A DNA stretch of 64,000 nucleotides, from contig OZ176052.1 in assembly GCA_964247055.1 (NCBI GenBank), positions 8,742,001-8,806,000 on the forward strand, written 5' to 3'. Under the pieces are notes generated by a model. It was not told the DNA's origin, ran no database searches, and saw only the letters and a program-made list of their open reading frames with translations. The stretch is from Paragordius varius (taxonomy: Eukaryota; Animalia; Nematomorpha). Positions 160-49,400 of the stretch are shown here, piece after piece (the stretch's first letter is position 1; each line of letters opens with the position of its first letter). The translations under genes were made by a program, and so were the position numbers.

Positions 160-3100
160 CTAGATTCAAATTTTTTTATTTTAATTTGGTAAATATATAT
201 ATATATAGGTATATAATTTTCCTTATGGTTTTAAAAATAAAATTTAGTTTGTTAATTAACAAATTATATATACATATCACGTTGGAAATCGACTCTTTAA
301 ATTAAACTTATGACTTTAATACTTTGTAAATTTGACTAATTAAATATATTTAAAGTAAACACTCTTACATAAAATTAAAAATACTATATAAATGATTTTT
401 TAATAAGAAAATATTTAGAAAAATATAAAATTAATAAATGTTGATAGACTTACATGTGTATATTGTTAGTAATTTTGACCCTATCTTTGAGCCAAATTGT
501 GTTTGGAGAAGGGTAGCCCTTAAACAAACAGCTAATGTTAATAGAATCACCTGTGTAGGAGATATCATCGTTGATAAGGCCCAAAGTATGAGCTTTGTTT
601 GATGGCTCAATATCCACAATTTTCGGTGGATCTATAAATTATCATTAGTAAAAGTACTTCTAGTATTTTAATAAAATAAATTATTGGTGACATTTTTTAT
701 TTTTACCTGAAATCGACGCGGTATATATTTAAAAAAACAATTTCAAAGATCTTTCTTGGACAAGTAAGCAGTACCATAAAAAATAAGGGTATTATTTATT
801 TTTAGAGTTTTTATTTTTATAAAATGTAGTAGACAGGTTAGGGTTTGGGATTATACAAATAAAAAGTAAATGGACTGATTTTTTTGTTAATTTAAAAATT
901 AACCGTTGTGATCAATTAATTTAAACTTATAATATTACTATATCTTAACACTCAACCTATGTGATATGATTTAATTTGTATCGCATGATAAGCTTATGTC
1001 TAATTTTTTAGAGCTTCAAAGCTACGGTCCAACCAGGACAGACCTAGCCCACTCTAGCACATTATAAAACAAAAAAATTTGATTTTTGAATTTTTTATTC
1101 TTTTTCATGTTTGTTACTGTAGTAAAAAACACAATTTTAATTATTTTAATCAATTTATTCAAAAAATAGTGATTCTAGTTAAATACCAAATAAACAGATT
1201 GAAAAACTCGTCCAATAATGATCACAGTTAAAAATATTTTAAAAAAAAATATTTTTCACTGTAAAAATGGTAAACCTCATATAATTTATATTAATAATTT
1301 TACATTTTATGTTAACTTGAATTTGACGGCTTACACTTGGTTGAATTCCATTTTCTGCCAAACAGACATAAATTCCAGCATCATGGCTACTAACATTGTT
1401 TAAAATAAGTTCTGTCCCTTGCTTGTTTAGGAGAACTATATAAATTATATATTATAAAATCATTGTGGGAAAACTGAAAATAATTTAATTTGGATTATAT
1501 ATATAAATTTGATTTTATATAGCGAGTTTTATTTTATTTTCTAATTTTTTTGGGAAAAGCTTTTTATAGATTACAGATAGTACAAATTGTAATTACTGAA
1601 ACTCCTTTCTAGCAATGTTTTAGGAAAAGTTTTATTGTCATACACTTTGATGGGCGTATCGACGAATCGGGCCCAACTTATGTTGGGAACAGGATTACCA
1701 TGGCTTAAGCATCGTAAAACCACATTTTGGCCAGTCAAACTTTGAATATCTTGAGATGTTTCGTCATTTATAATCTTAGGTGAATCTAAAAATATATCAG
1801 TTTAAGTAAGTTGATTTTGGCAAATATTTGAGCAAAAAAATAATTAGACTTAATGACTAAGCAGTTTCATTTTAGATCAAGGGTTGTAGAAAGAAAAAGA
1901 GTATTTTTGTTTGCAATACAGCAGCTTTTTTCTCTTCTATAGATATAGCCGCTTAATATAAGTGAATATATTTTTCGAAAAACTTGATTGTCAAACCAAT
2001 CTTTTGTCACCTACCACTTACTTACACACATTTAATTATGTCCTTATACATTTTTTAATTGCAAACAAACAAACTAACAACTTTTTCTATTAAAATACTT
2101 TGATTTGACTTACGATAAACAGTTAGATGTGTAGTTTGTGTTATGGGAGGAAATCCATTAATTTGACACATGTAGAGGCCCTGATCAGTCGTGTGGACTG
2201 GTGAAATGCGTAAAATCCATTTCATCCCATCCATCTCTTGTATGCCTTTGTACCGTCTATCCTTGGTTAATACGCGATTTCGGAATACTAATATGGTTTG
2301 CGAATCTACCCTGAGCCAAGCAATCTATCATTTTTATAAATATATATATATATATATATATATTATCATCCTAAATATTGTTTATCATGCATGCATGCAT
2401 ATTTTGTAAATACGTTAAGGTTGATAGATTTTTTTATGACTTAACAACGCTTATAGATCAGAATGATCCATCATTTTAAAAATATGCATATTTATTAGAA
2501 TACTAGTTTTAGGTGTTGACAAACCAAAGGGGTCATCCTACCAAAACGATTTTTTCTGATATATATATGATTTCTAGTTAAAGAAAAGATTTATGAAATT
2601 ATAAAGACCATAAACAGACTAAAGAAGAATATAATTGAATGCATAAATTTTGGATTATATTATGTGATTTAGATTTTTTCATTTTATTCTAATACAGTAT
2701 AAATGCATAAATTTTTGGATTTTATTTGGTGGACCTTTATACAAAATGTATGGGGAGACAACACAAAGTTTGACAGTTTTTTGCATTTATAAAATTAGAT
2801 AATATCATTTTTTGAATCATAACTTGGGATGCCATAACTAGAACTAAGAGTCCAATTTTATTCATATATTTTAATAATAATCACCATATTTATTATAGGC
2901 ATCATAATTTCATTTTTTTATTAACAGATTGTATTGATTATTACTATTTTGTCAGCTGAAAGATAATATTTTCAGATAGTTGGTTAATAATATAATGCGG
3001 ATTATTAATGGTAGTAGCAGCGTTTCAGGTTAATTGGCAAAATATTATCACTTTCATTTTTAGTCGTTTTGTGTCAAAGTTTGGGGTCAGTTAAGTTAGA

Positions 3101-6100
3101 CTCAAATTTTTAGACAGAATAATGTTTCGCCTTCAAAATCAAAAAAATCAGAGGATCACATAATTTAAGAGATATAAATACAAAAACTAAAATACGCCTA
3201 ACAGCTGATTCACGAAAGTAAAATTGTGAAAGTAATCATATGTTATTATAAATTTTAGGTTATTCAACAAGGTAAAATTTTATTAAACATTATCTATTTT
3301 TAATTTCATAATTTTGCTTGCCCAAGTTCATAATTATTATGCTTCAAGTGTTCTGCATAAATATCTGGCTATCTCTTAGTGGCTTCATCAAACACTATTC
3401 ATTTTAGTGCTTTCTTACTGAAATTTAAAAATTATTTCTAAATATGCCATGTCAAACGCGAATTCCCATAATAGTTTGTAAACAATTTAATAAGATTATA
3501 TTTTTTATCTTTTAATATAGTAATAACATTATAAATATATGAAAAATATGAACGACATTTATAAACTTGAATATACCGAGAATCAACTGTTAAGCGCAAT
3601 TAACTTTTTTACATTCATTCTTATTTCAACCTCCAACTTTTCCCGTTAAAATTACCATTATATTTATTAATTAACTTGCAGTCAACAAATATTGGAGCAT
3701 TTCACAAAAATTGTTGTAATGTATTCTAACCATTTTATTTAGTGTAATAAATTGCAATGATATTATGGTTTAAATTATAATTTTGTGTAATGTGTTAATT
3801 ATCGGAAAAGAATACTTTTAGATTGCATTTAAACCTTTCATTTTACACCCCCTACAACCTGCATGTTTGTTTTTAAAATTAATATTACATTTGATAAATT
3901 GGTGAAACCATAAATTGGTAATTGGCGCAAGCAGAAAAACAGCCTTAAATTTTGCGTTTAAATTATTTTTAATTTAAAAATCAATCAGATTGGAATTAGT
4001 TACTATCGTTAACATATGCTAGATTATTTATATTTAATATTATCATGTTAGTGGTCTTCAAAAATGATGATAGAAGTCTCTCACCAAATCACATAACCAT
4101 AATCCAATAAATCATAATCCAATAAATTTTACAATTTTAATTAATCTGCAAATTAATCAGGCGAAACATTTTAATTAAAAATTTTGTGAAAAAAATTCTT
4201 TAGAATGGCAAAATAATTTTAAACAAGTGGCTTATCACTTGGCAAATTTAAAAAACAGATATTAATCCCTAAGATGGTGTCTATAATAATCTGAAAATAT
4301 GTGTTATCTCTTTTTTAACCAACAAAGGCCCAAATTAAAAATTATATTTTAATATTAATTTTTAAATAAGTTAACATAGTAACAATAAATACATTTTACA
4401 TAAAGTAATTAAAAAATTGTGATATAAATAATTGAGTATATTAATCATTACGTCTCTGCGACCCAAAACGATAGTTATTTTAAAAATGAAGGTTTAAATC
4501 GGGGATGGCCAACCCGCTATTTTCGGTACGCAAAAGTGCTCAAAAACATGATAAATAAAAAATTGGATTTCAATCAAAAATTTACGATTATTTAGAAGAA
4601 ATATCACCCGAAATTTCGCTCTCCAAATTAATAAAAAAAACCAAAAATTATCAAAGCAGCCGCAAAAATATTTGTATTTGACACCCCTGGTTTTATTTAT
4701 ATATAAAATATTTGTCTTTATATTTTTACATGTTGTTGTCCGTACAATTTCAATTTTACTGTATATTATATTTAATTATCAATATTTTTCATATTACAAA
4801 ATGTTAAAGGTAAATTCTAATTGCTCCGTGTGTTGACATCATAGAGTAAACTTTCCTCAAAAAAAACAGACAAGTGACAGAGTTAAAAGCTTTTACCTAC
4901 AATTACTCTTCTTAGATATAGTAGTATACTAATTGCACCTTATTTCATAATATTTTTTTGCTATAAATGCTGTATCATTTTACAATATAGTAATTTGTGT
5001 GATGTATAAAGTTTGGCTTGGAATTATCAAAAATCTGGATAAAAACATAAAAATCAATAAATTTTTTTGATTTTTACCTAATATTATATGTATTATTTTA
5101 TTGTGAGAAATATATCAGGGTATTCTATCCTATATTTATGTTAGTGAAGCAAGTTTTTTTAGTGGCAAAATTATTTCTAAAATTATGTAAAAAAAACAAT
5201 TTTATTATAAAAGATAATTCATTTTCTCCATAAAACTCCGCATAAGGATTTTAAGGGGATTATCATTTTTTTTATAAATACTAAATGAATAACTAACATT
5301 TGATAAATCAAAATAAGGAATTAATTTTTAGTGTCCCCCCTCCCTTCTTTCTCCTACTCTTACGCTTCTACCATGATTGATAAGCTTAAGCTATATAGCA
5401 CAAAATAAATTTCATTAAATTTTATAATATTATATGAAAGTTTTCGCGTATATAAAAATGTCAAAACTAGGAATATTTAATGTCACAAAAAAATTGCGCG
5501 CTCATTTTAAGGCCTAGGACGACAGATTAATTCTGATGTAATTGCTTATTTCCTTCCGAAATGGCTCTCTAAATGTTATATATATAGCAAAAACATTTTT
5601 TTAATATTTCAGGGAGATTTTTCAAAACGAATAGATTGGTTTTCATAATAATTTTTATATTTTAATAAAAAATGTGTGCTTTTTTTAATATTTCAAATTT
5701 TTTAAAAAATTTGTTTTAATAATTGTAACTAATCGTTAATTAATTTTTAATGAAAAAAAACAACGATTTAATTTTAACAAAAAAAAGAGAGGTATAAAAA
5801 TTAGAAATCAATTCTCTGACCACGATTGGCAAATAAGCTATAATAATAAATATTAAATATATATTTTATATACTGCATTTTATTGACATAATAATAAAAA
5901 ATAATTTAAACGAACAATCTCTACACACGATAATTATGGAACAAAAAGGATTATGATTTATTAATACGATGCAAGTTAAAATGTTAATTGGCAATTAAAG
6001 TTAAATATGAAATGCCATATTGTTAAGTGGGGGTCTCAATCAATAAAGTAAGGATATAAATTATTTAATCGTGAGCCATTTAAAAAATTATTTAAGTTTC

Positions 6101-26300: not shown

Positions 26301-28404
26301 AAAATCTACCGGACCATCCTAAAAATATATTTAATCATTTTTTGCTATAATTGTTCGAAAAAATGTGTAGGAGGATGTAAAATAGTTTTGATATGCGCCT
26401 GTTTAGTTTTTTATGGAAATACAAGTTTTTGACGTTGAAATATTTTAATTGTTAAAACTGGTGTAACAAGAAAAGCCACAAAACTAGATTGAATATACAA
26501 AGCTATGCAAATATTTTGAAAGATATTGCTTAGTTATAAATATCATATTGGTTAAATAACTAAAATTTTGTCAGTATCAAAAAACTTTGGCATTTTTTAA
26601 TATTACTAACCTGATGGGCAATGACAACTGAAGTTTCCTATTTCATTGAGGCATATACCCCCATTTTGACACAACCCGTTAGGTAAATTTGATTGTGCAC
26701 ATTCATCAATATCTGCTTCACAGAATTGACCCTGGAAGCCAGGATGACACTTGCATCTAAAATTTATAGATATAGGGCTAATTATAAGTTAATATATTTT
26801 TTCAAAAATTATTTTTAAATAATTATTTATAAAATGTTCATTTAATTGTAAAATGTTACATATAATTGTCGTTAATATTATTTTCATCCGGTATGCAAGT
26901 TCCGTTGACACATTTATGATTACGACAAAAATCTTTGCGATGTTCGCATAAAACACCTTCAAACGCTGGTGGGCATTTACACACGAATGATACATTTTTC
27001 TAAAGACAAAAAAATGGATTAATGTCATACATATATTAATAAATTTCATAATATTTTTTATTTGTAATGTAGTATACGCTGAAAAAAAATGATTTATATA
27101 TATTTATATATATTAAAAACATTTTTTATATTAAGGTGTGAATATGTAGTACTTTAAAGCCTTATTGTTAAAGAAAGACTTTGAATGACCGTTAAAAAAT
27201 GTATGATTTATTTCATTAAAGAGGAATTTGGATAAAATTTGCATATATACTTTATTATAACAGTTTATACAGTAAACATGGTGTGTGCCTTGTCTCCAAA
27301 ACAAAATATAAAGTAAAAAAAATGTTTTAGAAAATGCAAAAATTTACATAATAATAAGTTCACATGGATGAGAGAACAAATTACTTACTTATTATGACAT
27401 TAATTTATATCCGATTTTTGAGACATAGAAAAGGAACCAGTTGTTAAAAAATGAAAAAGGCAATGGCAAAGTTTTGTTATCCAGTATTATCATTTAGATA
27501 AAATTTAAACCCAAAAAATGGAAATAAAACTTTGAATCAATATTCGGATTTATCAATATTTATTAATAATTAATTTTTTGACAAAACTATACAACTCTAA
27601 AAAATGTTAGAAATTATTGGGAAAAAAAACAACCTTTTCACCAGCCAAGTAATGAGATTCAGGTTGACATTGTCCTTCATTGTGACAAATGTTCCCTGTG
27701 GTGCAATCAAATGTGGTAGGGATGTCGCAAAAGTCCCCAAAAAAGTTTGGTATTTTGTCACAATCACACGTGTAATTAGATGGGCCTTGAGGTACGCACT
27801 GAGCCCCGTGAGAACATTTGTTGTTTTCGCATGGATCAATTTTTATTTCACATCTAATATGTCCAAATCATAAAGGTATAAATCGTGGAGGACTTTGTTA
27901 AAAAACTATTAAAGGGCTTTAGAGTAAAGAATGATGTAAAAACTATATTAAAAATTTAACCTATTAAATATTTTTTTTCTAATGTGAAAAAGCTAATTGC
28001 AATCATTGTAATACAGTCCACAAAAAAAGTTAATGCTAAAGTTTAGAAGAAAAAATGTTATATCATATTAGGATTGAATCCATACTGTATCTTATAAACC
28101 TTAACATTGGTCGAATGATGTGAGGAGGATTATTGCGCTAAATTTTGTAAGGCCTGATTTTTGTATACGTGATTATAAAATTACAAATTGTTTAATTTAT
28201 CTGGACTCATTCCAATTTATCATATGCATTTGCTTAAATATATATTTTTGTAAAAACATAATATTTTATCATTGGATATTTTTTAGAATAGTAATTAATT
28301 TTTTATGTGGTTTTTTTATTCAAAAGTTTTTATATCACGGATGTAATTTGATTTTGACCAAAAATCAGATATAATTATCATCCTTGAAAAAACGCCACAC
28401 TATC

Positions 28405-28445
<41 letters not shown>

Positions 28446-31400
28446 CAAGTTTGTACTTTTTTGAAGAAAAAATTATATAAATGCGACACAAAATATTTGT
28501 TAGACTTATTGATTACCAACTCTACCTATCTTATAAGCTTGTTGTCAAAAAATGTGGTTAACGCATTTTTATAAAAAAGCATAAATCATATTTTTTTTAT
28601 TCGTAGAAGATTGTCATAAAAAAATAAGGATTCGCAATCACAATGTTTCTTAAAGTAAATTAAGGAATTTAAACCGTTTAAAATTCACATTATGATATAC
28701 AAATATAAAACTTGAAATAGTAATTAAATACTTTATATTTATGGTTAGATAAGAATTATAGGTTAACGATATTGAAATTATCAATTAATAATGCTTAGTT
28801 TAATTTTTATATTAAATGGTTGCGTACCTATCTATATCGATTAGGTTAATGCGATAAATTTTGCGAAAGAAAGAAATTTAATATATAGGCATAACGTAAT
28901 AAAAATGGGTTTAATTGCATAGAAATTATGTCTTATAATAAATGTATTATTATGTATGCTCTTAACTGTTTTCACTCACTTATGTAATATAAAAATAAAA
29001 ATATTTCTGTTTACGCAACAGTACCTAGCGCCTTTGAAACTAGGCAGACATTCGCATTCAAACGTATTGATCCCATCTATGCATGTGCCATTGTTTTTAC
29101 AGGCGTCGGGAAAACAGTCATTTATATTATTTTGACAGACTGGGCCATCAAAACCAGGGGGACAGGTGCAATTGTATGCGTCAAATATATCTGTGCATAT
29201 GCCTAAAATTTTTTACAAAATAAAGTTAAATACAATGTCATATATGTAATTTACAACGAAATCACGTTTTAGATATAAAAAAGGGGGTGTTTTGGGGTAA
29301 CAAGAGGCAAATCTGTACTATTTACAGATTAATTTATATGGGTGTTTTAGTGCTACAAATAGATGCACTACAGGTAAAAAATCTTATGTTTAACAAAACA
29401 TAATAAAAAAATGAAATAATATAGTTTACTGCAATTTTGTTTGCCCCTAAAATGATAGTAAACCATAAAACTAAGCATTGTTTGATACATAAATTAACCT
29501 ACTAATAATATTTCGATTGAAGGACAATTCCTATGTAGATACTAATTATATATAATTAAAATATTAGATAATTGAGCGATGTAAAGGCGAAAAAAGAGCA
29601 GTATTAGAAAAAAGGCAACAAATATATATTGACTCTTGATATTTAGTATTTTTTAGGACGATAGATATTAAATTTTAGGTTTATATTAGTTTTAACCGAT
29701 TTTTGGGTGAAAAATGTAATTTAAAATGAAATCAATAATTTAATTTATTCAAAATATTGTTCAACGGCTTCTACGCATTCTGCTCATCTCTCAGGTAATA
29801 TTAATGCTGTGTCAAAAAATTAATTGTATTTTGCGGAGAATCGTTCGTCAAGCCATTTTCAACGTCTTCCAATTTACTGAAGTGCTCCTTTGCGAGGATG
29901 TGATTGTGCCCCATTGATGTTAAGTTGTGTCAGCGCCAGATCACAAGAGTTCAGCGGATGGCAGAAGATTTTCCGATGGAAGTAATCAAGGTGGGTTTTG
30001 CTGTGTAAGACGGATTGTCATGTACCAAAACAGTTAACAATGTGTTCTGACCCACAGTCGTTTTTTGATTAATGCATGGTTTAAATTGATCATTTGTTGG
30101 ATAAGTTTGTGTATTAACGGTTTCACCGGGTTAGTTAACACTAAACCGCTCTGGTCCAACCAGACACAGAGAATGGTCCATCTTTGCAAAGCGATTTGGT
30201 CTTGATGTTGACGGACAGATTTGTCAACCTTCCACAAAATAAAGCCATTTCTCATCACCTGTCCCAATTTGATGCTAATCTTTTTTTGTGACGTTGAAGC
30301 AGTATTTTACGAGTCACTTTGAGTTTCGATTTTACGTTCATTAATATCGTGTGGAAATCCTTTACCGAGTTTATTCTTTCCAATCATTGAAGATATCTAT
30401 TGATTGTTTTTTGTAATTCATATAATCTCCCAATTGTTGTCAAATTTGAATTGGGTCATCAATAACTCTTGCACTTTAGCGTCTTCGTAGTTGTAGTTAG
30501 CGGCTGCTCTCTTTCATTAAATCACAATTTTTAATATTTCTAAAGCATGCTTCATATATGTTAAGAGAATGTTCACCATATGTTTATACCAGTATACAAT
30601 AACTTTCAACAGCTTTTTTCCTGATGGTATAGCGTGTAACAAATTTTACTTTTTAAAACACAAATTTCAACATGATTATTAAATCAAAAAAGATAAACGC
30701 TAGTTTCTGGCGAAATCAACTTGTGTGGTCGTTTGATGTCAGATAAAAAATGCGGTGTGTATGTAATCGTCTGCGTACTCTTCGCGTCTTCTCTTAGTTA
30801 AACCTATAATAAATTGTGAATGCGCCTACTAAATGCTAATACCGGCATCTATAAATAAAAAATCAATTATGAATATCTTGTGATAAAAAGAGCTAAATAT
30901 ATTTTATATATTTTTTTATATTTCAATCGACCCTTGCAATCACTATAGAATTGAAATGGGGCCACGGTGAAATGAAATATATTTCTATTTTGGTTGAAGA
31001 AAAGGGCAGTTTTTTGCTGAAAATTAGTTTATTTAAATTTTTTTAATAAAGGATGTATGGTAAGTTGATTACATAATTGTTTAGAAAAGGTCACCGTACT
31101 ATATCTACCGAAAAGTGTGTCATAAATAATCGTTAAATCTTTTAACCTGTTTTATTGGCGTAATTAAAAAGAGGTGATATAATTTCAGCATATTATTATA
31201 ATGAAAAACCATTTAAATAAATTTAAAAGTATAGCCAAAATCGATGACTTTTAATTGGTGAGCAATTTATGGCATTATTAAATTTGATGTTCCATGAAGG
31301 AAACCGAGATTTAAATTCAAATGTTTACACATAGAAATAATAAATAATTGTTAACAAGTTACGTTGTGAAGTTGGACTTAGAGTTTGGTTGTGGCTTATC

Positions 31401-34400
31401 AGTGATGGAGTCGTATCCGTGGTTTCCATATTGGTTGGCTCCGAGAATACTGAAGTATCATTCGAAAATAGTGTTTTATCGCTATTAAGTGTCGTATTTT
31501 GTTGTAAAGGCGTAAATGGGGAATATGAATCATACGGACTTGATAAATATGTTATGGGCTCGCTAGTTTGATCGGTAATAAAAATTGTGGTTAAATTTAA
31601 ATGTTGTGTCCCTAGCGAATAAAGGTATTTAGGGCGCCATGCCTGGGTCGTGAATGTATTGGTGTTGTTTTCGTTGTTGTTTAGATCGTTTACATCAGTA
31701 TAATCAACATCTCTATAAAGATCAGGGTGATCATATTGGAGAGTTTCATTGCCAGTATCATAATCCCCAAAGGGTGTTAGAGTATTGTGAGTTGTTCTAC
31801 TTGTCTCTATAGGATTTTGGTTATTTATCAACATACTTTCAAGGACAGTCATTCGAGTAACAACGCTACTTTTTACTTTGGTATATTCAATATTCGATAC
31901 TGAACTTTTTTCTTCTGATAATATTCCTTGTGTGGTGTACCCATGCTGGGGATACGAATTTGTGTTATAGTTTACGATATTATCAGTTGGTTTAAATTGA
32001 GTTGATGCGGTCAGAGTTTGTTCCCTCACGTTTTCTAGAGACTGTTCAATTTGCTGGGTATCGGGTTGGGGAGAAGAAAATAAAGTGTTGTTTGAGTGAT
32101 CCACGTAAATTATATTGAGTTTAGGGTCATGAATTAGGGGTGATGAAATGGGATTTATTTGAAAGTTACGGGTTTGAGAATGGCTTTCTAAAGATCGATC
32201 TTGATCATATTTGGTCTCATTAGTCGGTAAATTAGATTTTGAATAAAAAGTTTTATCTTGTATATCTCCATCACTCAAATGATTAGCTGAATCATTTGTT
32301 TCCGTTTGATTTTTAACAGGCGCGTCATTGCTCTCTTGGCTGTGCTGAACTTTCACAGATCCCTGGACTTGAGTATTTAAAATTGCTAGAGGAGAATTTG
32401 CATAGTTATCACTTTTGTTTGAATTATTTTCTTCTTCTTGATTTAATAGAGTGGTAGGCAATGGCAGATTTGTTGTTGTAACTTCTAACGTCGTCGAATC
32501 TCCCAAATGGAAAAACTGTGGTCCTGAATAAATGGTTTCATTAATTTTAACTGGATCCAAATTTTCTTGGGGTGTGGATCCATTTTGTTGAAGCAAGTAG
32601 AAATTATTATAATTATGAAATAATTGTCCCCATAAACATTGGTATTGTAAATTCAAGATTAATAGAACTTGAAGAATACACTGTATTCGCAGCATAGTTA
32701 AAAAAATTTAAATATATCTTTTAAAAGTGATGAAACGGATCCATATAACAATTAAAACAATCAGACACTCAACATTCGAATTCCATACAATCGGAAAAAA
32801 GAAACACCATTTAAATTACCATCATATATATATAAGTAAGACGATATAATAATGTGAAAACGGATATTTAGATTTTGTGATTTAATAAACGCCCCTTTTT
32901 TATCGTAAATATGTGCGACGCCGAAAGTTTAGTCAGATAAAAATTATTATGCTAGATAAAAACCAAAAAATACCAGTTAGATATATATTTAAAACTAGTC
33001 AGTAAATTGGAATCAATGATTGTAGGAAAATGCGATAAAAAATATAAAATTATTAACTATTTATAATTGTAATATTATGAATACGCACTGCGTAAATGTG
33101 GTATACTGCTGATTATGTATATTGAATATGCATAGAGAGAGAGTCGATTTTGTCAATTAAAATTTACGACAAGTTGAATGCGAATATGCGACTTTTTCTA
33201 GAGGAACGAACATACAAATTGCTATGTAGTGTGAATGATCTCTTTCGATGACTTTATAAATTAAAAACAACAAGAGTGCTTTTTTGTAAATTTATATGTG
33301 AAGAAGTTTACTCTAAAGACGACACAGGATAAACACATAAGATAAGTATAAGTATGAGTAAAAATTATGTAGTAATTTATTTTTCCTGTTGTTTTATCAT
33401 GTAAAGAAAAGGTGAGTTTTTTTTTCAAGTTAAACAAATAAATTTAAAGGTGTTGTTTGTATTTTGTGTACATATATGAGTATATGTGTGTGTGTGTGTG
33501 TTTTGGAGTCTTTTATGTTGTTTGAAGAGGTATGTATGCATATATATATGTATGTTTATATAAAAATACATATTCAGGTAAATATATAAATATTTTTAAT
33601 TTTTTAATGTTTTCTTTTTTTATACTTTTTTACGAGGTACATTACTGACTGTATAATTTAATGTTATTAGATAGATAGATGCTTTTTTGCATTTTGACTT
33701 ATAGCTAAACGCTGGTACAGGTGGGTGAATTTATAAATGTTTATAATAAAAAAAGTATAGTATAAATTTGAATATTTTGAAAAGATTTATTATATATCAC
33801 GAAATATGAAAGGTATTATTTATAAATTGACCAAAATTCAATTTATATATATATACATAATAAACTATTGTTTAGCTCATTCTATGTCAAATCTATATCA
33901 ATATTTTTGATTATCATTTATTCATAATAATACAATTAAACAAAATTACAAATATTTTCATTAGTATATTTGAAGGTGTATTTATTGAGTTAATATGTGT
34001 TATATATTACAAAACTTTAATGGAATTAACTCTTTTTTATAATAAAAATAACCATTTCAAATCTGTGAGTTAATGCAGGATAATCCAGTTTTCATTTAGA
34101 GCTTTTGTTATCTTCAAATAGAATTATTTAATATTGACTTTGAAAATATGGTTTTAGCTCTTGGCAGTTAAATGAGGTTTAAAATCATATAGGAAAGGTG
34201 TCATTTAAAATAAAATTGTTAAATCCTTTGGCCATATTTCATTGCAATTAATAAAATGATTTTTTTAAAAAAATTTAATATATCGTGTTTCCAAGTAAAA
34301 GCTTGAATAAATATTTGTGGATAATCTCATAGATGATAAAGATTTTAATTACAAATAATGATAATTCGAGGGAGGTTCCCCCAATTAAACATTTAGGTTG

Positions 34401-37400
34401 TTGTTCATATTTAACGGTAAAACTTTTTTATGATAATATAATTTTTATGTTTCACAATGGGATAAAAATAAAATAAAATCCCAGTATAAATGTGTAAAAT
34501 TATATAAGTTATGAATCTATTAATAATAACAATAAAAAAATATGGAAAATGGATGAATTAAAAATGAATAGTTATAATGGTTTTAACTGTGCTTTTCCTA
34601 AACCTCCTCTTCCTTTGTTATATATTATAAGAAAAATTTGATTATGAATTTTATGCTAAATGAATACATATATGTATGCCAAAACACTTTTCTAAGTATT
34701 ATGATTTTATGTGCCAAATATTCTTTTCAACTTGTCTTTGTAGTGTTAAAGTTAGGCGGTGTATCAAAAATACTTCTGTTTCATTATTCTTTTCTAACAT
34801 CTCGATTCTTAAAACAATAGCATATCAAGTTCAGCTAATTACTTTTTTCTTATAGATGCTATTAAGAAAACTTTACGAAAAAAATAAATTAAATATTAAA
34901 GGAAAACTATAAATTAATTAACCTGGACTATCAATTTGATCAAATATTTGACTTAATGGGCTTTAAAATAAAAATAATTTCATATGTATAGCGCAATGTT
35001 GGGGTTCTCATAATTTAAAAAAGGCAAGGAGCAAACGCCATAGAGAGAAAAATCAATGCAATACATCATAATGTTTCAAACAGGCACCGAACGGGTAAAT
35101 AACATGTTAAAATATTCGGCTGAAATTTGGAGAGTTTTTCTGCCAAAAAAGGCCAAGATTAGAAACATATTTTTCACTTTAAATTTGACCCTCTATGCAT
35201 TACGTTAAAGAATGGAGTTTTAATGACAATGGTAAAGTGTGCGATGGTGGAAAAAACCAGATATGGTAACAACCGTTTTGGTGGAACCGAAACCTGAGAC
35301 AGCTAATCGGGATTAGAACAAAATCTGAGGGAATTTATAGTAATCCCTACCCATAAATTCAAATAATTAAAATTTTAGATTATGGTTGTCTATAAAATAT
35401 CACAAAAAATATAAATGCCGCCTTTCTTTTAATTTAACAAAAAATGCGGTAAAATTGATTGTGCCTTTTGTTATGGATTTTACAAATTCAAAGATTCCTG
35501 CGAAACGTCGCCTTTACTGAAGGAAAACGTTAAAGAAATGGGAACCCTGAGATTACATCAAAATTTTTAATCTTGGACCATAACACTGATCACGTGCGGC
35601 TAAATTATCAGTAGTTATACAATTTACTTTGTTTGAAAACAAACCTCTTTGTAAAAATAATAATGGTTTAATGAGACTTACATGGTATTTTTTACATAAA
35701 AAGCCATTAAAAATTTTAAAAAGAAGAAACATTATAAAAACACTATTACGCAAATAACATACACAGTCTATATAAAGTTTGGACAATAAAAACAGCTGAG
35801 TGTGTCACGAATTACAAGAAAAATGCGACGCGTATTTTTAAAACCACCAACCACTTATAAACGAATGTAATTTTTTACAACGATAAAGACGTTTGATGTG
35901 GCTTTTTTGCAAAAATAAAAAAATGTTAAAAAAAGCTAAAAAACATGTGGACATGGTTTTTTATGCAGTATTATTAATATGAATAATGCAAAAGTAATTT
36001 TAAAAAAATGTCACATACAATAATGATAAATAATAATAAATTTACAAAAATATATATAAAAATATATATTATGAATGAAATAAAACAGTGTTATGAAACG
36101 ACCGCCATATGTGTCCTTAATTTTTTGTCGCAAACATTGTTGCCAAACTTAGTCATAATATATTTACATAATAATTTTGATCTCTATCTATGACTTTGTA
36201 TAAATATTTACCATAATATAATATATATTCAAATCTGGAATCACAGAACCGAATGATAGTCTATTTTTAGTTAACAAATTTAGTGTGAATATTTATTTGT
36301 GATGAATATCACAATCAAGAATATAAAGGGATTGCGGATTCAGCCTAAATATTTGCAATGCTTATTACGATTTCCTAAACAATAGAAAATAATTCTAGGA
36401 TTTTTAAGAGACACATTATATATTAAGTCATATTCTAAGATTTCTTTTTTAGACAATACAGTATAAATTGATTACTAAAATAAGATTACTTTATCGACTC
36501 AAATGAGGACGAATGTGGAAAATTAATTAACACTTTCTTAATTTGTTAGTTGTACCAAATGTTTATCCCCTTTTCTTGCCAGTGGTATGGCCACAGCCCG
36601 CAAAATGTTTGCGGATATGGCAACATAAAAAAGCCCTTTTTATTTTTTTTTATTTTAAAGAAATAGGACATTTTCGGTTTTCCGGAGAAGGAGGTATAGG
36701 GATAAGCCTTGGGGAGTTCGAATTCCTACTGCCTTCAGTGCAAAAATTAAGGACTATTGATTATTATTCCAAAAAATATTTTTTATATATTTTAAAAAAT
36801 TGTATTTACCTTTATTTAGGCAGGAATCGGGTTTACAAGCGTTTGGAAGAGAGCAACCTTTTTTAATATCAGAATTTTTCTTTAAATTGGCTAACTCCAC
36901 GTATTTGTCATCTTTAGACCAATCGTGTCTAAAATAATTTATAATTATTAAACACTTGTTTGATTTAAAACTTTATATTCATAAACATGTGTATAATTTT
37001 AATAACTAAACAAATAAAATTTGAAATTACTGCGAAAAGGGTAATATGGTAGCAATATTTTCAATCATAATAACTGGATTTCTCAGACATCCTTTGAAGG
37101 GATGAAGCTTTTTAGCCACCAAAGTAGTTACATCATTCATGGTTCCTAATAAACGATTAAAAATTGAATGCGGTTGCTCTTGAAAATTAAAAATCGTTTC
37201 AAGCTAATAATAATTTTAATGGGAAAATTATGTTTTTAATCGTAACCGGTGGAATTAATGAATATTATGTAAAAAACTGTCCAAATTTGGTTTTAGTGTA
37301 AGTTTTAATGAAAATGGTGATAATCGAGATATCGACTACCAAAAATACCATGTAATCTTATGGGAAGAAATCTTTTTTAAATTGATGTCTGATTTTACAT

Positions 37401-46400: not shown

Positions 46401-49400
46401 TGTGAGTGGCCAAACGACTGGATATCATCAGTATATCTCCCAATATACAAAAAAGGTGATGCACTCCAGTGCGCAAACTACCGAAACATAGCTCTTATTA
46501 GCCACGCTAGTAAGGTCTTGCTAAAAATAATACAAAACAGGATGCACAGTATTATACAGTCAGAAATACCAGAAAATCAAGCCGGATTTATCAAGGGAAA
46601 AAGCGCAAGAGACCATATATCAAACATGAGAAGAATAATGGAAACATTTAGAGAGTTTCATAAAGAATTATACAAGTGTTTTATTAATTACAGACAAGCC
46701 TTCGATTCGATTAATTATGACTCCTTGTGGAAAAAATAAAGTTAGTAGGGGTATCATCCCACTTAATAAGATTGATTAGCTCTCTCTAAGTAAAACAAAG
46801 AGCGATTATAAGAACATCAGCGGGGGACACAGAATACCTATCTTGAAAGGAGTCAGACAAGAGTGTTGCTTATCCCCTTATCTGTTCAATATGTGCACAA
46901 AAATGATAATGATAAAGTTAGATGGTAAAAATATTGGAGTATGAATAGGAGGGAGAACAATCAATAATTTAAGGTTTGCAGACGATACCACTCTTATAGC
47001 TGAAAGAGTAAATGATTTAAAGGAATTGATTGAAGAGATTCGAAAGGAAAGTTTGAGTTATGGTCTTGTGCTTAACCCTAACAAAACCAAAATATTATGT
47101 ACTGGAGAAAAGCCTACAATTATTATAGATGAAGGGAAAATAGAAAAAGTTAAACAACTAAGGTTATTGGGTGCTATCATTTCCGAGGATGGGTCTTAAA
47201 CTCATGACATCAGAAAGAGAATAGGATTGGGTAAAGAAGCGATGACCAAATTAATAAAGATTTGGAAAACAATGGAGTTGAAACTAAAAAAAGATTACTC
47301 TACTTGTTCTCCCGATCATCACATATGGTAGTGAGAGCTGGACTCTCAGAAAATGAGACAAAGAAAGGCTGGCTTTCGAAAGGAGCTGCTGGTGTAGGAT
47401 GCTAGGATACACCTGGAAGGATAAAATAAGAATGATTCAACTACAGAAATAAAGCCTAAAACAAACATCCTGGAGATAATTCGAAAAAGAAAGTTAACAT
47501 ATTTTGGTCATGTCATGCGATCGAATTCTCTAGAGAAAGACACAATGTTTGGGAAGGTAGAAGGACAAAGAAAACGAGGCCGACCACCGATGAGGTGGTT
47601 AAATATGATAAAAGAGGAGACAAAAATGACATTAACGATCTCAATGTAGCGGTAAAAGATAGATAAAAGTAGAAAGAAATAGTGAAAACTATATCCAAAA
47701 AGTCGTTTACGATTAGGAATAACCAACCAAAAAATATTAAAAATTAAAATCTCTAATTTATTATATTGTGGTGGTATGAGTAAGGCCTCTGACAATGCTT
47801 TCTCCGGATGAACTACACAATCATCATTATCAGCCCAGGTGCTTTACAGCCTTTGGGTCATTAACACAAACCTCTTTAAAAATATGGAATGTTTTATATA
47901 TTGTTTATTTCTTGGATGTAATCTTCATTATTTATTTAATAATAAACTTTAAATCGTATCCGAATTAAATAAATTTCTATTTACTGCACTAGTGGCGATG
48001 AGCAACTAGAGTTAAGGAAAAGGGGGGAAAAGGTTGGGGCCTTTTTCGGAAAATTTTTAATTTTATCGTCCTAAAAAAGGCAATTGGTGTCGAGAATCAT
48101 TTTGCTAATACTACATGACTTTACCATAATTGCAGATGTTTTCATATTCAACACATTCATTGACGTCATCTTGACACATGATTCCCTTATATCCTTTAGG
48201 GCATTCACATTTGAAGCCTTCAACTTCGTCTATACAAGTTGCATTGTTATAACAAGGATTCGGTTCACAATCATCAATATTGTGATCGCATTTTACACCC
48301 TCGAATCCAGGTTTACACACACATTTGAAATCATTTGTTCTGTTAGATATCACATTATTTAGTAGTAAAAATATATTTAATAATAATAAATTGACATAAC
48401 CTATTTTATACCTATACTTCGATTTAAATTGGGGTATCTAAACATCGCAGAGTCTAGTTAATATTTTTGGAAAACTATTGAAAAAAACGGTCCCAATTCA
48501 AATTCATGCTTTTATCCTAATAAAAATTATATAAATAAGCCGAAATATCTAAATAAAATGTAATTTTGAAAAAGAAGATCCATATCAAACTACTTCGACG
48601 CCATTTTTATTTTACAAAATTTTTGCAATATGTGCTTATTTGATTTGTGGTTATTTAATTTTAAAGCTAAAATTAAAGCTAATTTTACAGAAATCACACC
48701 ATTGATCCAAACAGAAAAGTGGTTTTTTTGTATAATTCCTTAATTTAGCTAATGCACAAATGTTATGTTGACAAAATAAAATAAATATTATCAAGTTTTT
48801 TGAATGATTTTTTTTTATATTTGTCCAACAGTAATGTTATATAAGTGCAACCTTTTGTTATGGTTTTAATCCCATAAGTTTAATTTTAAACAGGCCTGGA
48901 GTATCCAACGACCCCAATTTGAATCGAAGGACTGAAATGAATGTGTTGTAGCCAATTGTTAAAATAGGAAATACGGAAATCGGATGTTTATAAAATCATG
49001 AAATATTTGAGGGCAAAATTAGCTAATTTTGCAATGGGTGGTATATTTTGAAAATTCGGACAGAAAAATTTATATTAAAGTTATATTTTAGGCAACCCCA
49101 AAATGTTCAATGTTAATATTAAAACAAAATATTTTATATAACATTTGGCAAAAATTATAAAGCAATAATTTAACAAATATATGAATCACATCATAATTGC
49201 GGATTACTACCATTAATCCAGCACCATGCATTTTAACATAAGATATATATCCATTGAGCAAAATTTTTTTACTATATTTTTTACTTAATTTTTAATATCC
49301 TGACAACAGCTGAAAATCAATTATTTTCACTATAATACAATTATAGTTATTTAATTCATAATATATGTCCAAGTTGTATAAGTAACAAAACACAAAAATA

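Follow-up and report, generated by a model that had tools for sequence, protein, structure and literature searches.

A probable alternative first exon within the largest intron of the hairworm crumbs gene would give rise to a short Crumbs protein with the canonical tail

Crumbs acts in polarity mostly through its tail, and far less is clear about what its ectodomain does. A 64,000-nucleotide stretch of the genome of the hairworm Paragordius varius (assembly GCA_964247055.1, contig OZ176052.1, positions 8,742,001 to 8,806,000; referred to as the window, whose own positions are used throughout) contains a crumbs gene whose largest intron, 7.6 kb in length, holds a long open reading frame (ORF) on the same strand as the gene. 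The locus therefore raises the question of what this intronic frame is for, and whether it belongs to crumbs at all. As set out below, we think it likely that the frame serves as an alternative first exon, transcribed from a start inside the intron, and that a short Crumbs carrying the canonical tail is made from it. Such an arrangement had been proposed in a first-pass annotation of the window, and the fate of its claims is reported here together with the results that bear on them.

The window is AT-rich animal DNA, with a GC content of 22-36% per 1-kb bin, and the gene occupies its minus strand from about 58743 to 20124 as a multi-exon unit with numerous EGF-coding exons. In its terminal exon, about 23 hydrophobic residues directly N-terminal of KKKRATRG form a single transmembrane (TM) segment, which is followed by a 37-residue tail that ends in EERLI. 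When compared with the Drosophila Crumbs tail (PDB 4wsi, 4yl8), this exon gave a match with an E value of 7.8e-12 over 36 residues, RATRG-YSPS and LKPPPEERL(I) being shared between the two animals. As is typical of the Crumbs family, the tail is short, includes a FERM-binding stretch and closes with ERLI, a PDZ-binding motif. Because its tail matches that of Drosophila Crumbs, the minus-strand gene is, as judged from sequence, a Crumbs orthologue.

As described in the first-pass annotation, the intronic ORF consists of 456 codons and runs from an ATG at 32695 to a stop at 31325 on the minus strand. It is the sole long open frame of the intron, the runner-up listed there being of 77 amino acids (aa), and its length is far from what composition would yield: across 300 shuffled versions of the intron, the mean length of the longest open frame was 91 codons and the maximum 162, versus the 460 codons observed. 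An in-frame TAA at 32710-32708 stands five codons 5' of the ATG, and an A occupies position -3. The ORF is single-copy, since a search of the hairworm's own genome (an assembly of 110.5 Mb in 44 contigs, which all own-genome searches covered) returned only the ORF itself, and it has no similarity to the other open segments of the window. A search with the 444-aa product of the exon described below gave no accepted relative among 1.84 billion representatives; a match to a bacterial repeat protein was judged to be due to chance, its score coming from five repeated short matches. With the ORF product, a Pfam search gave no family, and the best score in the ESM Atlas, 0.81, was at chance level. 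Close to the end of the ORF, after 31363, there is a phase-1 donor (c/gtaact), which fits an acceptor AG at 29204-29203 that opens a crumbs exon at 29202; both splice sites on which the proposal had been built can be seen in the sequence.

To find out whether this junction is used, we turned to the contigs of public sequencing runs aligned to 27550-33500, a segment that takes in the predicted junction together with two exons downstream of it and 800 nt of sequence before the ATG. The record of one run, X4, whose contig set comprises 24 Mb, does not state RNA. Its depth is 400-870 over exons and 0-0.25 in the intron that separates exons 29025 and 27853, and its joint 27853>29025 has CT..AC ends on the plus strand, that is GT..AG on the minus strand. 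Since exons are covered, introns are not, and the joints are GT..AG on the minus strand, X4 behaves as cDNA and was read as such. In two further runs, X1 and X5, introns are covered along with exons; these runs behave as DNA and are mute on expression. The X4 contigs span the whole ORF, with 31331-32723 at a depth of 660-870, showing that it is transcribed, as had been supposed. Moreover, two contigs skip exactly 2160 nt, from 31363 to 29202, at depths of 524 and 500, which is the very junction that had been predicted. These two contigs represent two alleles, as an alignment row reading 29199>31360 corresponds to this junction in a copy that carries G>A at 29201, a synonymous change by which, read from the two rows, the junction codon turns from CGC to CGT, both Arg. 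The elements joined or removed in this transcript are the following.

31363 to 32695, minus strand: coding part of the probable alternative first exon (1333 nt, or 444 codons and one further nt, with a phase-1 end; ORF together with X4 contigs at depth 580-1020).
29203 to 31362, minus strand: intron removed in the short form (2160 nt, GT..AG; X4 joint 29201/2 to 31362/3).
29025 to 29202, minus strand: first shared exon, encoding the final two thirds of one EGF, with 4 Cys, and most of the next EGF; both borders are X4 joints.
27634 to 27853, minus strand: second shared exon, with EGFs (X4 joint 27853>29025; the contig goes on into the exon at 26999).

The same contigs bear on two other ways of explaining the frame. 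Because the ORF has an ATG and a stop of its own and its C-terminal end is hydrophobic, it might look like a nested single-exon gene that ends at 31325. Depth, however, drops from 700-1000 within the exon to about 2 beyond the donor (31132-31330), so that the transcripts do not read through to this stop, and the exon is joined to 29202; a chance ORF that is not expressed, for its part, should not exceed the shuffled introns so far in length. Neither of these readings is, in our view, credible to any real extent. A cassette exon, entered through a phase-1 AG near codon 10 (about 32668), would place some 435 residues between Cys2 and Cys3 of a long-form EGF, and its phases, 1 in and 1 out, do agree. 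Against it, the X4 contigs are collinear with the genome and unbroken across 32641-32756 at full exon depth, a stretch that includes both the ATG and this AG (as deduced from the distances of sequence differences to the contig ends), and the insert would split an EGF; we consider a cassette very improbable. A lack of transcripts over the ORF, the read-through and the splice into this AG were the three outcomes that the first-pass annotation itself had named as contrary to its proposal, and none of them was seen.

Upstream of the ATG, the transcript continues into a leader.

32696 to 33051, minus strand: transcribed leader, the minimum 5' untranslated region (X4 contigs 32641-32756 and 32891-33051).

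The leader is thus 356 nt long or longer; two allelic X4 contigs cover 32891-33051, bins up to 33121 have a depth of about 270, and in 33122-33500 there is no X4 coverage. From 33051 to the ATG, stops interrupt each of the three frames of the leader; consequently no protein can enter the ORF from an upstream exon and translation of the frame must begin at 32695. At 32700, only five bases outside the ORF, a single nucleotide is deleted in one X4 allele, which fits non-coding sequence. A TATA-like TATAAATAG at 33065-33057 was given no weight, as the DNA there has about 25% GC and the contigs already reach 33051. A literature search on spliced-leader trans-splicing in Nematomorpha returned nothing. 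About 430 nt and more upstream of the leader there are a (CA)n microsatellite (33483-33503, minus strand) and AT-rich short tandem arrays.

Inside the ORF, the variation carried by X4 is of another kind. The two indels found there, of -9 and +3 nt, keep the frame. Counting listed differences only (40 of 117), to which all figures given here refer, the 30 listed single-nucleotide polymorphisms of the exon comprise 12 synonymous and 17-18 non-synonymous changes, where about 6.5 synonymous ones are expected if the same mutation types are placed at random (P=0.015), and the rough ω from these allelic differences is about 0.4. Random placement would on average create about 2.4 stops, versus none seen once two adjacent changes in codon 6 are read jointly as Cys to Leu. 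On these figures the variation of the ORF looks coding-like.

Several observations weigh against a start within the intron and against a short Crumbs made from it. From the contigs the 5' end lies at 33051 or further upstream, and contigs are unable to reveal a transcription start; an AG at 33058-33057 is a possible acceptor for an exon further upstream; and the leader contains six upstream ATGs, with ORFs of 3-13 aa, which may dampen translation. All RNA evidence comes from one run, of unstated tissue and stage, and another run guessed to be RNA, X6, gave nothing in 27550-33500, not even crumbs exons, and says nothing either way. The ω value was calculated on a subset of the differences. X4 carries two balanced haplotypes over 27550-33100, each about 2-3% from the reference even in coding sequence, which means either very high within-species diversity or a diverged lineage under the same species label. 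Finally, a relative of the ORF was found nowhere in the sequence searches.

The first three of these observations would also fit an internal exon, transcribed from the main crumbs promoter and entered through an acceptor near 33056. The contigs end at 33051, just short of the AG, the 5' end is unmapped, and the upstream ATGs are many. In that case the whole 1.7-kb exon would be part of long transcripts, in which the stops of the leader would truncate the long protein, resulting in a secreted ectodomain or a target of nonsense-mediated decay, and the 444-codon frame would see little translation, if any. An untranslated frame, however, would not remain open over 456 codons at 32% GC, nor would one expect in-ORF indels in multiples of three next to a 1-nt indel just outside, or the excess of synonymous change. 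The tract before the AG is A-rich, without the T-rich run that precedes two of the three RNA-supported acceptors (29202, 26999), and the nil coverage of X4 in 33122-33500 is weak evidence in the same direction. An internal exon of this kind therefore appears improbable to us.

What protein would the short form encode? Its exon lengths sum to 3363 nt, that is 1121 codons, and this multiple of three serves as a check on the exon model. The size was obtained by adding exon lengths, and the domains were searched for exon by exon. The order of elements is a signal-peptide-like start, about 420 aa predicted to be disordered, a 4-Cys partial EGF, 14 complete EGFs, the TM segment and the tail with ERLI, with no LamG-type region; the earlier forecast of an approximately 1120-aa protein with a 4-Cys half-EGF, 14 EGFs, a TM segment and a FERM/ERLI tail agrees with this in every count. 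The first 19 residues of the exon at 29202 match positions 13-31 of the 36 in the EGF_3 profile, so the half-EGF has been read correctly, and residues 29-57 form a full EGF. Further downstream, a 1091-nt X4 contig leads from within exon 29202-29025 via 27853-27634 and onward, and past 27634 it matches the exon that starts at 26999 letter for letter. Of the junctions, the first three have RNA support, and the later borders were predicted from frame, GT/AG sites and EGF continuity. Pfam EGF, hEGF and EGF_CA all score above cut-off in the shared exons.

32627 to 32695, minus strand: signal-peptide-like N-terminus, about residues 1-23 (Arg3, hydrophobic core 4-16, possible cleavage after LWG).
26999-26860, 26756-26611, 26318-26184 and 25637-25401, minus strand: shared exons (the start at 26999 RNA-supported).
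24763-24401, 23137-23030 and 21514-21240, minus strand: shared exons (predicted).
20354-20124 (coding to 20127), minus strand: terminal exon with the TM segment, the 37-aa tail and the stop (predicted border).

Residues 2-16 are the top Kyte-Doolittle window of the ORF product, and AlphaFold, run on the single sequence, gave a helix over residues 2-38 with pLDDT >90, values <50 for the rest, and no other folded domain. Cys occurs at positions 6 and 20 only, in keeping with the earlier statement that none follows residue 20. The domain of about 420 residues has 23% S+T, 19% N+Q, 6% P and 29% S+T+P, and a net charge of about -28. It had been described as mucin-type, which did not hold: mucins have very high Ser/Thr/Pro, usually in tandem repeats, whereas here the composition falls short, the ORF has no tandem repeats in its DNA and no internal repeats in its protein, and the last ~44 residues alone reach a mucin-like S/T content (about 43%). 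Likewise, the many N-glycosylation sequons that had been pointed out are there, 14 N-x-S/T sites having been counted, but they are not enriched over the 11 +/- 2.8 expected from composition. The outer domain is probably glycosylated, and the 'anti-adhesive brush' suggested for it was speculation that our results do not support.

The long form was considered from the exon on the other side of the intron.

36810 to 36928, minus strand: long-form exon with the first third of the split EGF (sequence only).

This exon terminates with ...CKPDSCLNK-g/gtaaat at 36810, in phase 1, and its donor is predicted to join the same acceptor, 29202. The phases of the 36810 and 29202 exons agree, and jointly they form a regular six-Cys EGF. 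How much this junction is used is a separate matter. The junction contigs of the short form continue unbranched over 42-44 nt of the shared exon; contigs in this set are apparently built from words of about 31 letters, and a second retained form of the junction would break them about 30 nt in. The summed depth of the two junction contigs, about 1020, compares with 771 for the contig of the downstream exon. Because the junction contigs are unbranched and their summed depth is no lower than that of the downstream exon, the short form appears to be the main form at acceptor 29202 in X4. Since contigs drop rare variants, absence of the long form cannot be read from X4.

The same two observations would also follow from a fission of the gene, in which the downstream unit has become the only membrane-bound Crumbs, 36810>29202 is rarely or never used, and the upstream exons, with their EGF and LamG-type regions, are now a separate gene that probably codes for a secreted protein; that the upstream frame, read on past 36810, reaches a stop after 22 further codons would suit such a protein. 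Yet the two exons are in phase and both halves of the EGF are intact, giving the regular six-Cys pattern, which suggests that the 36810>29202 junction is still under selection, and one sample whose contigs leave out rare variants cannot prove that the long form is absent. Fission thus seems to us unlikely, and an alternative first exon beside a predicted long form the better account of the locus.

In the long form, the exon-by-exon search for LamG domains gave a single faint Laminin_G_2 match (E 0.026, 42568-42347), and the other candidate LamG exons had no Pfam match in this search; from the sequence, the ectodomain of the hairworm Crumbs seems unusually diverged. Two long-form exons, 58743-57913 and 44045-43083 (minus strand), contain long S/T/N-rich, Cys-free stretches within the expected LamG-like regions. 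In an upstream crumbs intron, on the opposite strand, there is an RVT_1 fragment (E 4e-6, 46518-46736, plus strand), probably a retroelement relic. The intron that holds the ORF also contains a high-copy repeat at 29740-30560, where the DNA run X1 has a depth of 1300-3300 versus about 350 alongside, together with numerous variant joints and loose ends; a 90-codon open segment in it (30306-30037) has a faint match to the mariner-type Transposase_1 (E 0.14), and the repeat is probably a decayed transposon.

Put together, an alternative first exon would work as follows. A second transcription unit of the single crumbs gene would start in the 7.6-kb intron at or slightly beyond 33051, at a putative promoter. 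Its first exon would comprise a non-coding leader of at least 356 nt, the ATG at 32695 and 444 codons found nowhere else, which would encode the signal-peptide-like start and about 420 acidic, S/T/N/Q-rich, Cys-free residues predicted to be disordered. By the phase-1 splice from 31363 to 29202 it would be followed by all the downstream exons that it has in common with the long form, which in turn is predicted to complete an EGF via the same acceptor. The product, once translated, cleaved after its signal peptide and glycosylated, would be a type I membrane protein of 1121 aa. Its tail should recruit the Pals1/Stardust-PATJ complex and FERM proteins like any Crumbs, its extracellular face would differ by the absence of the upstream EGF and LamG-type regions, and the flexible, probably glycosylated domain could serve as a spacer or shield.

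A more far-reaching version of this can be offered only tentatively. A whole-assembly search with the TM-plus-tail peptide found no second Crumbs TM-plus-tail locus, the next-best match (E 0.43) lying inside an unrelated 1555-codon open frame, and at the sensitivity of this search no CRB3- or EAT-20-like gene was detected in the assembly. It is conceivable, though we would sooner doubt it than assert it, that the only crumbs locus of this animal makes short Crumbs as its main product, and that a lineage-specific exon of about 420 residues, born in an intron and kept by purifying selection, takes the place of the separate short-Crumbs genes CRB3 and EAT-20. If true, a new exon and a new promoter would have rebuilt a core polarity protein.

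For the study of Crumbs, a pair of forms with the same tail and the same 14 membrane-proximal EGFs, with or without the large EGF/LamG-type region, in whose place the short form would have an unrelated disordered domain, would provide a natural experiment on the role of the ectodomain. It would also mean that short Crumbs forms with intronic starts are not restricted to vertebrates, and would illustrate the birth of a large orphan coding exon within the intron of a gene that is deeply conserved. Gene models built on homology would miss an isoform of this kind, yet in one RNA sample it appears to be the predominant transcript at acceptor 29202.

How does the hairworm form compare with the short Crumbs forms already described? 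In zebrafish, crb2b makes a long and a short form by alternative starts, the short one beginning in intron 7 (Zou et al. 2012, as cited in PMC7044448). The novelty claimed for the exon in the first-pass annotation is reduced by this precedent. Like crb2b-sf, the hairworm form is a short Crumbs from the same locus as a (here predicted) long form, with a putative intronic start. According to a schematic legend in PMC7044448, crb2b-sf keeps the downstream part of the long-form extracellular domain, and we found no report of a large new domain being contributed by its unique 5' exon, whereas the hairworm exon adds about 420 orphan residues. Mammalian CRB1-B arises from an internal promoter, has a unique 5' exon with a predicted signal peptide spliced to the shared exon 6, and is the most abundant isoform in its tissue, although it had been overlooked by annotation (PMC7335077). 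As in CRB1-B, a unique 5' exon creates a new N-terminus and is spliced onto a shared internal exon; the hallmark of the crb2b-sf/CRB1-B type, a unique 5' exon with its own ATG and a signal-peptide-like start spliced to a shared exon, is found in the hairworm transcript. In contrast, CRB1-B has a unique 3' exon and is without the conserved polarity-binding tail motifs, while the hairworm form has the canonical tail in addition to a long disordered domain. Drosophila Crb_C includes an alternative exon with a T/P-rich stretch and 19 predicted mucin-type sites that is probably O-glycosylated (PMC5312091), and here, too, an alternative crumbs exon adds an isoform-specific, probably glycosylated stretch. 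The fly exon, however, is no first exon but a 321-nt cassette in the long form that also adds an EGF, and every fly isoform retains the full ectodomain, unlike the short form of the hairworm. In C. elegans, short Crumbs proteins come from genes of their own; one of them, EAT-20, has 808 aa and three EGFs (PMC4359734), so that much of its ectodomain must be non-EGF. EAT-20 and proteins of the CRB3 type have Crumbs tails and reduced ectodomains, like the hairworm short form; they are encoded by separate genes, whereas one Crumbs-tail locus was found in the hairworm genome. Thus, the principle of an intronic start and that of an isoform-specific glycosylated stretch are already known, and what is new in the hairworm is their combination: in an ecdysozoan outside insects and nematodes, with a large orphan coding first exon, a canonical tail and no separate short-Crumbs gene detected.

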